The notes below the pieces were generated by a model that searched no databases, had not been told where the DNA came from, and saw only the letters and a list, made by a program, of their open reading frames with translations. This document shows, piece after piece, positions 50,401-53,400 of a DNA stretch of 64,000 nucleotides (position 1 is the first letter of the stretch; each line of letters starts with the position of its first letter). Position numbers and translations under genes: made by a program. Origin of the DNA: Paragordius varius (lineage: Eukaryota; Animalia; Nematomorpha); the NCBI GenBank assembly GCA_964247055.1, contig OZ176054.1, forward strand, positions 9,114,001 to 9,178,000. The letters are read 5' to 3'.

Positions 50401-53400
50401 CGTTATTAGAAACAAACATTAACGATATAAATCATAATATCTGAGACGTTAGTTTTGACCAACAACACCTATTGTTAAATAAGAACAAATAACCTTTTTG
50501 AAACCTTATTTCATCATTAATTTTAATAAAAATTCATTTATAGAAAATTTCAAAACGACCTCAACTCCATATTTTAAGATAGTTCAAAGTAAACTAATCC
50601 CATAATTCAATAATTTATAAATTATGTATCAATCAATAAATAAATAACATATATAATGGCAAAAAACATATCCTTAAAATGTAGAGGTTTTATATTTAAT
50701 TAGACTACTTTTTTGATTGCAAACAATCTAATTATAATAGCGCCCAAAATCGAAAGCGTAACAGGTATTCTTTTCAAAGAAGTTTTTTTACAAACATTGT
50801 TAAAAAATTGAGTGATAATATATGATAATATGATAATTTATATGTGAATATATTTAATGTGTAGGTAACAACAACTTTTATACATACCTCACACATATGT
50901 ATTATTTGATGAATATTTTTATTAGCTGAGAGTTTACGTGCTCCGACCGTTACTTTAACGTAATCCAATAACATTTCTTTAGCAAGTTGATGAACTTCAT
51001 CAGGCCAAGTCGCACTAAACATCAGAGTCTGTCTATCAGGCTAATATTTGAAAGAAATAAAATAGAATTATCTATCACATAGCTAATATTTTTTGTGGAT
51101 AATAAAATTATACTCAAATGATGATTAGTGAATTAGTAAATTGAAACATAAACTGATGCAAATGAAAAGATACCTAAAATATATTAATAATCATCCTTCT
51201 AGGTGGTTATATAAGTTTAATAACTTATATTTAAAATGGTTCATATTTTAATTTAATTAATTATACATAGTCAATACACACACGCAGACACAAATTTTTT
51301 ATTATAAAGTTTGATCTTATCATAGAGATTTCTCGTAAATAAAAGAGTATTTTACGTAGTGTGACAAAAAATAATTTCGCTATAACTAACTCGAAAAGAA
51401 GGAAAAGGAAATAGCGATTAATGATATTAAAGTGAGTAGGGTAAATAAGAGAGCTAATATATAAAATACCTCGATTATAAAGCGCAATCATAAATAAAAA
51501 TGTCATAAATAAAAGTTAATGTGGCTATAAATTTTCGGATAATTGCCTAAAAACCATCATTATTTAGTGTGAAGGCGTATTATAAAAAGAGTATAGCTCT
51601 ACTCAGGGGCTGAATAAAGAAGGACATAATATATATATAATCTTTTGTAATAACAGTTGTTAAATACGTAAAATAATGATAAACGAAAATTAAATAAAAA
51701 TTAATTGAAATTATAAACAGAAATTAGTAGGATATGTAAAACCCTTTCCTCAATAATAATCGCAGACTAGTCATGTGTTTAGCACTCATCAGTACGACAC
51801 AACTATTTGACTTGGGGTTTTCACATATCGATATCGTATATATATCCAACTTTGCAATTTTGGTATAAATGCAGTCGGTTATACAATTATAAATTAAATC
51901 TAATTGACATTATTAAATTGAAAATTGGAAAATAAACCTAAAATTAGCACTAACAACCCTAGATCTAGAGTAGAGCTACTTAGGGATTTTCAAAGAGTTC
52001 AATTTAGTAACTAAGAAGCACTGTCGTACTGATGAGTGATAACAAGCACGAAAATGTGTGCGATTACTATTGACGAAGGGTTTCAAATATCGTTTATAAT
52101 TTCTGTTTATTATATCTTTCAATTAATTTTATATTTAATTTTCGTTTATCATTATTTTACGAACAACTGTTATTACAAATCAATTCGTCATTTACCATTG
52201 CAATACATCTTTATCTTATGTTTCTTAACAAAATAGAGTGTCATTTAGTTATTAAATTGATTTCTTTGAAATCTCTAAGTAGCTATACTCTAAATCTAGG
52301 GTTATGCCTAGTGCTAATTTTAAGTTTATTTTCAAATTTTCACAGTTTAATTTTCATGGACAATTAAATTTAATTTAAATTCGTATAACCAACTGCATTT
52401 ATACCAAAATTGCAAAGTTGAATATATATACGAAATCGATACGTGAAAACCCAAGTCAAATAGTTGTGTCGTACTGATGAGTTAATAAGCACGAAACTAG
52501 TGTGCGAATACTATTGACGAAGGGTTTCACATATCGTTTACAATTATCTTTCAATTAATTTCCTATTTAATTTTCATTTATCATTATTTTACGGATTTAA
52601 CAACCATTATAATATATAATCTTCTCAATTATAAATGAATTCTTTAGAATTGCGCCTATAACGTCTGACATATTTTCGAAAAAAAGTATAAACATTTTTG
52701 GGAATAAAAACTTTTACCACAAACGCTATTCTTAGAGGTGATAAAAAGTAATGTTATGAATTAACGGATTAGACATCTGCATATAATCTCATAAACCTTT
52801 TTACCATATTGTCATAAAAATATTTATCACTTAAAAAGTAAATAAAATTATAAAACTTCAATATTTTGTTAAAATTATCGAAAAAACATCCGTAATCATA
52901 ATTTTGACTTTCTATTCATGAAAAAGTGTTATTCCAGGCATGTGGTAAATTACATTTAAGTCAAAGTAATCAGTTATTTGATTGAATCATGTTCATATAA
53001 ATTTTACCCTCAAATATTGGATAATATTTTTTATTTGTGGTTCGAATCCTAAATCTAACATCCGATCTGCCTCATCAAGGATCAATAGAGAGCAAAGATT
53101 GAGAGATGTTTCACAACTTTCAAGTAATGTAATTAATCGACCAGGAGTGGCGATAACGATATGCGGATCTAAAAATTATAATGTATGATAAAAAAATTAA
53201 TATGAGGTGATAATTTCATCAGTAAATCTATCTCATCAAAAGTCTAGCACCTCGTGTCAAATGACTACAAATGTTCATATATGTGGGTTTATTTGAAGAA
53301 CACACCCAGTCCAAGGTTAATAATTTACCTGCAAAGACTTACCCCTCATAGATTCCAGCAAAGTTAAAATAAAAATGTTTGTAGTTAAATACTCACTCCT

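Follow-up and report, generated by a model that had tools for sequence, protein, structure and literature searches.

A decayed two-armed insertion of a non-coding type I hammerhead element, very probably of retrozyme type and copied by a Penelope-like enzyme

The window analyzed here is a stretch of 64,000 nucleotides (nt) from contig OZ176054.1 (assembly GCA_964247055.1, positions 9,114,001 to 9,178,000, forward strand), in which positions 51645-52611 are occupied by one 967-bp insertion bounded by an exact 12-bp target-site duplication, ATATATAATCTT. This insertion is very probably a non-coding element of the non-long-terminal-repeat (non-LTR) retrozyme type, as retrozymes are defined in PMC7229834, which carries a type I hammerhead ribozyme and was copied in trans by an enzyme of the Penelope-like elements (PLEs); a derivation of retrozymes from PLEs is treated in 10.64898/2026.07.22.740005. 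The family to which the insertion belongs is a further member of the already described animal non-LTR retrozymes. The window copy itself is an old and inactive representative in which all three hammerheads are dead.

To define the insertion, we read the window locus over 51200-53100 by repeat finding and a three-way alignment of its segments A, B and C, and mapped it onto a 444-nt reference unit taken from a near-perfect tandem at another genomic locus (L019). The resulting layout is summarized in Table 1. Two arms abut with one base common to both, and each has the 3′ end of the element on its outer side; that of arm A belongs to the shorter of the two terminus classes described below. The three copies named in a preliminary description of the sequence, A inverted, B direct and partial, C direct and full, were all found. 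The unit length of ~360 nt given there has to be corrected to 444 nt, as ~80 nt between B and C that it overlooked belong to the unit. With these included, B and C form a single unbroken direct arm of 1.3 units (52022-52610, forward strand) in one continuous 586-nt alignment, which runs from unit position 266 through 444 and on to ~407-414, and B is a partial tandem (pseudo-LTR, pLTR) continuous with C. A 28-nt tail deletion in C was considered and dropped, C ending at the short-class terminus with two substitutions. Exact matches of at least 11 nt between random AT-rich flank windows arose in 0.25% of simulations.

The same unit recurs throughout the 110.6-Mb assembly (44 contigs, ~27% GC). 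With copy C as the query, 79 scored matches were obtained among 372 candidates, while the stretch made up of the hammerhead core, stem II and ACUAGUC occurs exactly 129 times genome-wide. Exact copies of the 43-nt motif GTCGTA-CTGATGA-GTGC-TAACAA-GCAC-GAAA-CTAGTC-TGCGAT number 76, and 185 copies are found when up to 3 mismatches are allowed, against 0 occurrences of the reversed-pattern control, which places the family at no fewer than 185 hammerhead-bearing copies, with several hundred copies dispersed in the genome. The unit is AT-rich (GC 26.6%), and no open reading frame (ORF) longer than 60 codons was found in it, even when it was read as a trimer. Together with the lack of an adjacent reverse transcriptase (RT)/GIY-YIG ORF, detailed below, these properties bear out the small, non-autonomous, retrozyme-like ribozyme element of the preliminary description. 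Hammerheads in tandem on the same strand always lie ~444 nt apart without an intervening ORF. Across the 27 non-redundant family loci on which insertion features were scored (within L001-L030), copies diverge from the consensus by ~3.5% on average, which indicates a young family. An older two-armed insertion at L024:1490-2500 (G000:C3) carries in both arms a variant hammerhead with GUU for GUC, the loop UAAUAA, and a stem I in which a G-U pair has become A-U and one mismatch is present; the ribozyme of the source lineage has thus changed over time.

The consensus hammerhead of the family reads GUCGUA-CUGAUGA-GUGC-UAACAA-GCAC-GAAA-CUAG-U-C followed by UGCGAU, with every core position canonical, including A15.1-U16.1 and GUC. 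Structurally, helix I has 6 bp, two of them G-U pairs, and past a small internal loop it runs on via AAUAGU/ACUAUU and 15 further pairs into a helix of ~30 bp; helix II has 4 bp and a 6-nt loop; and helix III consists of nothing more than the A15.1-U16.1 pair around the palindrome CUAG (ACUAGU). The exact and near copies counted above, set against the empty control, uphold the earlier proposal that the consensus forms a complete type I hammerhead. Its 4-bp stem II and palindromic ACUAGU stem III were described correctly; its stem I, given as 5 bp, has 6 and the extension beyond them. Canonical metazoan type I hammerheads have 6 bp in helix I, 4 bp in helix II and 1-2 bp in helix III, the last with a small loop that is palindromic, and are active as dimers, while the minimal hammerheads (min-HHRs) of Penelope pLTRs combine 7-8 bp in helix II with 4-5 bp in helix I and lack helix III (PMC4209133). 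By these definitions, and judged from its sequence, the family ribozyme is a canonical metazoan type I hammerhead and not a Penelope min-HHR, so that the label "minimal" formerly applied to it does not fit a form with 6 bp in helix I and 4 bp in helix II.

Several properties of the copies agree with this structure. Intact copies match the Rfam family Hammerhead_HH9 (RF02275, a canonical type I model) with 27 bits and E=4e-4, and the core, helices I and II and the UAC of loop 1 are aligned in the match. Among the stem cells of 39 aligned copies (29 distinct rows), 97.2% are paired, a share that drops to 26-44% when the partners are slid. For the self-cleaved 444-nt monomer, the predicted minimum free energy is -84 kcal/mol (z=-4.5; 0 of 100 shuffles as stable), and its two termini pair within the long helix I. 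Because helix III is only the palindrome ACUAGU, cleavage is expected only as a dimer of two copies, and the consensus hammerhead would presumably self-cleave in this form; the ACUAGU/ACUAGU self-duplex is predicted at -4.8 kcal/mol. Cofolding of two hammerhead segments returned domain-swapped inactive folds only, the real dimer being non-nested and thus outside nested-structure folding.

The mode of insertion is recorded at the 27 family loci. An inverted arm lies next to a direct one at 20 of them, the inverted arms being 5′-truncated; an arm longer than one unit (445-1076 nt, up to 2.4 units) is present at 17, and an exact target-site duplication of 11-16 bp at 15. The outer 3′ ends are bimodal, lying either at unit 411-432 (...CTGTTAT(TACAA)) or ~30 nt beyond (...CATTACCATTA(CAATAT)), at unit 444 plus 3-9 nt, and in 14 of the 20 two-armed insertions the two ends belong to different classes. 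The inner breakpoints, which are the 5′ ends of the arms, vary between loci in a non-uniform manner: they concentrate at unit 306-346 (15 of 47; p=1e-5) and at unit 1-59 (14 of 47; p=0.002). The first of these hot spots closely follows the extended helix I on its 3′ side and lies 3-43 nt beyond the cleavage site (unit 303/304). Arm lengths fall into classes of ~100-140, 400-445 and 530-590 nt, in addition to the single arm of 1076 nt. As a test for separate arm templates, differences between arms (3.8%) were compared with those between tandem units (2.2%), a contrast that is driven by old loci. PLE insertions are marked by partial tandems (pLTRs), by a neighboring inverted copy that is 5′-truncated and, at one end, by a tail of 30-40 bp (PMC8557442). 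The Penelope-style combination of inverted and tandem copies, first suggested from the window alone, is a property of the family, together with its duplications and two 3′ termini.

The same data bear on the view that the repeat spreads at the DNA level, as a foldback or MITE-like DNA transposon or as a satellite spread by recombination, with the hammerhead match incidental. Inverted arms do superficially resemble terminal inverted repeats, and short tandem arrays are present, but each locus has its own arm lengths and inner breakpoints, whereas the outer ends invariably correspond to one and the same end of the element, the duplications vary from 11 to 16 bp, one arm often exceeds a unit, and a complete hammerhead core found 185 times against none in controls is hard to regard as incidental. 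We consider this explanation highly improbable.

Two of the insertions, at L017:1461-2280 (G000:C4) and L023:1184-1902 (G000:C7), are independent events that share one target site, around GATATTATGGATAT; they differ in arm length, and their tails are on opposite sides. Their target consists of homologous copies of another repeat, a Penelope fragment within an inverted repeat, and the shared site hints at a target preference.

The pattern of insertion is consistent with a mechanism in which the element, having no protein of its own, would be copied in trans by a Penelope-like RT/GIY-YIG enzyme. This enzyme would nick both strands of an AT-rich target 11-16 bp apart, reverse transcription would begin inside the template at either of two sites ~30 nt apart, and a multimeric or circular RNA would be copied for a variable distance. 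The expected outcome would be two inverted arms whose outer ends are both the 3′ end of the element, the longer arm often exceeding one unit and so forming a partial tandem. In the PAc element of Anolis, reverse transcription starts at two adjacent internal sites, and both target strands are cleaved and extended at AT-rich DNA (PMC11167929). One possible cause of the clusters of arm 5′ ends is an RT that stalls at the ribozyme helix while copying a circular or multimeric template; another is an RNA with discrete 5′ ends. Ends located just 3′ of the extended helix are what would be expected of rolling reverse transcription around a circular RNA that stops at each encounter with the helix. Circularization would presumably be performed by a host ligase, and the attribution of the copying to any one Penelope lineage is equally presumptive. 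Taken together, priming on both strands, the two start sites ~30 nt apart and arms of ~0.25, 1.0-1.25 and 2.4 units may, as a tentative reading, make this family an unusually clean natural record of a canonical type I hammerhead retrozyme copied by Penelope machinery.

Candidate sources of such an enzyme exist, since a GIY-YIG family search and a PLE protein search showed that several PLE lineages, including intact ones, coexist in the genome. An apparently intact PLE at L041:3204-6551 (G000:C1:4914204-4917551) contains a 788-codon ORF with RT and GIY-YIG at L041:3349-5712 on the reverse strand, a 170-nt pLTR, an inverted 5′-truncated arm and two termini 35 nt apart, the longer of which ends at the ATG of the ORF; this is the same geometry as that of the 444-nt family. 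No canonical hammerhead was found in the pLTR of this element. In Pfam, the full 788-codon protein gave no hit, and a 485-aa relative hit RVT_1 and GIY-YIG. Within the window, back-to-back GIY-YIG fragments at 43400-43985 represent a Penelope lineage only ~29% identical to the intact PLE-1 in the GIY-YIG domain. Members of this 43-kb lineage lie ~7-8 kb from the starts of contigs C1, C2, C5, C7 and C28, which suggests shared subtelomeric blocks. The preliminary description had kept the ribozyme repeat apart from the GIY-YIG family at 43 kb, and the data are consistent with this, as the two share no sequence similarity in a comparison that did not extend to full-length copies of that lineage.

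The relation of the family to these PLEs determines whether its copies could be solo pLTRs, or 5′-truncated remnants, of an autonomous PLE, an alternative entertained in the preliminary description. Penelope pLTRs do carry hammerheads and most PLE insertions are 5′-truncated down to the terminal repeat (PMC4209133, PMC8557442), and three PLE lineages, those of ~40% and 31-33% identity and the 43-kb one, lay outside the comparison. The tandem period of 444 nt with no ORF between hammerheads speaks against a solo pLTR, as does a hammerhead of canonical type I in place of the PLE min-HHR (PMC4209133). Moreover, no same-strand hammerhead pairs 2-4 kb apart are present among the matches listed, and the unit has no similarity to the pLTR or the 3′ ends of PLE-1 or PLE-2. 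At 26 of the 27 loci, no PLE coding sequence was found within 1.5 kb, so that copies abutting an RT/GIY-YIG ORF, for which the preliminary description had proposed a search, are absent there, and the family is not simply the 3′ end of a coding Penelope. At the remaining locus, a pair of units interrupts a PLE, which is split between aa 705 and aa 700; such an overlap is what a duplication would produce, and the case is accordingly a nested insertion in a PLE. The solo pLTR interpretation is accordingly improbable.

Several results weigh against the proposed classification and mechanism. At the level of the ribozyme, the covariance-model scan that had been suggested as a check gave the aligned match reported above, but Rfam gathering scores were not reached: intact copies score 27 bits on RF02275 where 52 are needed, a shortfall that follows from the missing helix III. 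No compensatory change was found in 34 stem pairs of the 39-copy alignment, in which most pairs are invariant and the family is ~3.5% diverged; the family is too young to show covariation, and the structure consequently rests on its match to the universal hammerhead consensus. At the level of the insertions, the excess of pairs combining a long and a short end is only suggestive (p=0.06), and the ends lie 110-145 nt downstream of the cleavage site with none coincident with it, so that cleavage is not visibly needed for copying. At the level of the partner, PLE-1, PLE-2 and the fragments in L031-L073 are without a canonical hammerhead by regular-expression search, and an Rfam scan of three PLE loci likewise found none. 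No similarity to the unit was detected in PLE-1, PLE-2 or the L031-L073 fragments, a comparison that left out the ~40%-identity, 31-33%-identity and 43-kb lineages, and local alignment of the 3′/tail regions scored below the shuffle mean. No autonomous partner was found among the lineages compared, which is the main gap in the claim of mobilization.

The position of the ends also bears on a further account, in which Penelope machinery mobilizes the element while the hammerhead is a passenger, the template being a linear multimer that was transcribed from a partial tandem in the genome and left unprocessed, and not a circular RNA made by the ribozyme, with cleavage irrelevant to copying. Neither class of 3′ terminus coincides with the cleavage site, and the arm 5′ ends cluster at unit 306-346 and 1-59 and not exactly at unit 303/304. 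Ribozyme mutants of PAc insert normally in vitro, in line with the position of the ends seen here, and RNA-seq of PAc gave no reads that terminate where the ribozyme would cleave (PMC11167929). Naiad PLEs, in turn, proliferate without hammerheads (PMC8557442). A passenger would nevertheless hardly be expected to retain all core nucleotides and stems intact in 76 identical copies, and the hammerhead region, at 1.9% divergence, is somewhat better conserved than the remaining unit (3.7%, p=6e-6) and than unit positions 1-229 (2.8%, p=0.03), both comparisons being confounded by coverage and low complexity. Furthermore, arms of 1.2-2.4 units recur, whereas linear templates under constant 5′ truncation should shrink the arms over generations, and animal retrozymes with this type of hammerhead accumulate as circular RNAs (PMC7229834). 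We regard this account as a serious alternative, though the less probable one. A role of the ribozyme in propagation is favored because the master lineage has kept it perfect, because arms above one unit are recurrent, and because circles are found in published animal retrozymes (PMC7229834).

Against this background, the window insertion can be placed in the history of the family. Arms A, B and C are 85.8%, 83.8% and 88.9% identical to the family consensus, respectively, and ~82-83% identical to one another. A and C have 13 differences from the present consensus in common, along with 37 private differences in A and 25 in C, and private changes amount to ~7-10% per arm at this locus; shared and private differences of this kind fit a single old insertion that derives from a previous version of the family and whose copies then decayed independently. 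All three window copies fall outside the conserved core through private lesions (Table 1). Those listed in the preliminary description, GAAA to AUGA in A and C17 to G in B and C, are correct against the family consensus. The substitution of C17 by G that is common to B and C, whose hammerheads lie 445 nt apart by their first bases, could be inherited from the template or coincidental, ~0.3 such coincidences being expected. At Rfam gathering thresholds, no match was found in the whole window, and a permissive scan gave a single match at the locus, of hammerhead C to Hammerhead_3 (RF00008), with 17.9 bits and E=1.4 where 48.5 bits are required. As a dead copy, the window locus is not expected to be active.

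Table 1. Parts of the insertion in the window, with strand relative to the window sequence and the observation on which each assignment is based.
Feature	Position	Strand	Basis or state
Target-site duplication, left copy, ATATATAATCTT	51633-51644	.	exact 12-mer either side of the insertion
Arm A, inverted and 5′-truncated, unit ~38-424	51645-52022	-	alignment to the 444-nt reference
Hammerhead A, dead	51759-51798	-	GAAA to AUGA, 3-nt deletion in loop 2, stem II GCAC to ACAC; C17 retained
Segment B, 5′-truncated upstream unit of the direct arm, unit 266-444	52022-52200	+	alignment to the 444-nt reference
Hammerhead B, dead	52023-52064	+	stem II GUGC to GUGA, stem III ACUAGU to AAU-GU, C17 to G at 52058
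Segment C, full unit from 1 to ~414, short-class 3′ terminus ...GTTAT	52201-52610	+	alignment to the 444-nt reference
Hammerhead C, dead	52468-52508	+	stem II 5′ strand lacking 2 nt, loop 2 C to U, C17 to G at 52502, stem I U to A
Target-site duplication, right copy, ATATATAATCTT	52612-52623	.	exact 12-mer either side of the insertion

A DEAD-box helicase gene, whose exon motifs include HRIGR, extends over window positions 48810-54030 on the reverse strand. The insertion lies within its ~1.95-kb intron between the exon encoding TPGR and DEAD (53175-52996) and that encoding SAT (51040-50777), and accounts for about half of the intron. Relative to the gene, arm A runs in the sense direction and the B+C arm in the antisense direction, and in the pre-mRNA the inverted arms could form a hairpin of ~370 bp.

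Elsewhere in the window, two decayed hammerhead-like motifs, CUGAUGAG-(4 nt: CGCU/CACU)-AACAA..., form an inverted pair at 19568-19598 on the reverse and 19819-19860 on the forward strand, with another such motif at 10435-10462. The pair is ~85% identical to the family ribozyme over 40 nt, and its flanks are unrelated to the 444-nt unit. A DNA search of the genome revealed no further copies of this remnant, which probably goes back to a related element that inserted much earlier.

Mobilization of non-LTR retrozymes by PLEs has been proposed and not shown, the published support being co-occurrence and, in vertebrates, similarity to pLTRs. The present family, which is young and comes from an invertebrate, adds support for the link at the level of insertion footprints through its clean duplications, its paired inverted arms and its two discrete 3′ termini. 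For genome annotation, the family explains short repeats, inverted or in tandem, that number several hundred and are in part intronic. If the host is a horsehair worm, these observations concern a phylum in which the automated annotation of a related genome, that of Gordionus (~27% GC), reported no Penelope elements (10.1101/2023.06.26.546503).

Among known systems, the metazoan non-LTR retrozymes (Cervera and de la Peña 2020, PMC7229834) resemble the family in being small, non-coding, AT-rich repeats with one canonical type I hammerhead per unit, head-to-tail copies, duplications longer than 4 bp, no LTR, a highly self-paired unit RNA and autonomous PLEs alongside. Their reported units measure ~170-400 nt, so that the 444 nt found here are slightly above the range, and they form long tandem arrays, in contrast to the mostly dispersed insertions of 0.2-2.4 units with an inverted arm. 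RNA circles are known for them, whereas the present family is known from genomic DNA alone. Satellite 2 of newt and axolotl and Sm-alpha of Schistosoma share with the family a type I hammerhead with 6 bp in helix I, 4 bp in helix II and a very short palindromic helix III, and with it activity expected only as a dimer, a likeness that is structural and not based on sequence (PMC4209133, PMC7229834); these repeats are present in thousands to 120,000 copies, compared with hundreds here. Plant LTR retrozymes (PMC4918200) are likewise non-autonomous and have hammerheads that process their transcripts, a processing that is predicted for the 444-nt family, yet they differ in having type III hammerheads within real LTRs, primer-binding (PBS) and polypurine-tract (PPT) sites, 4-bp duplications, high GC and mobilization by Gypsy.

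Comparison with the PLEs themselves concerns the mode of copying. The pLTRs with min-HHRs (Cervera and de la Peña 2014, PMC4209133; Craig et al. 2021, PMC8557442) share the partial tandem, the inverted 5′-truncated neighbor, a tail of 30-40 bp on one side and the placement of a hammerhead close to the 3′ end, and differ from the 444-nt family in that the latter has no RT/GIY-YIG ORF, carries a hammerhead that is not a min-HHR and is dissimilar to the pLTRs of PLE-1 and PLE-2. Work on Poseidon PAc of Anolis (Frangieh et al. 2024, PMC11167929), an autonomous element of a vertebrate, was carried out in vitro, while the present evidence consists of genomic footprints of a non-autonomous element; nonetheless, the two 3′ ends ~30 nt apart fit the two internal RT starts of PAc, the two inverted arms fit its cleavage and extension of both strands, and the targets of both are AT-rich.

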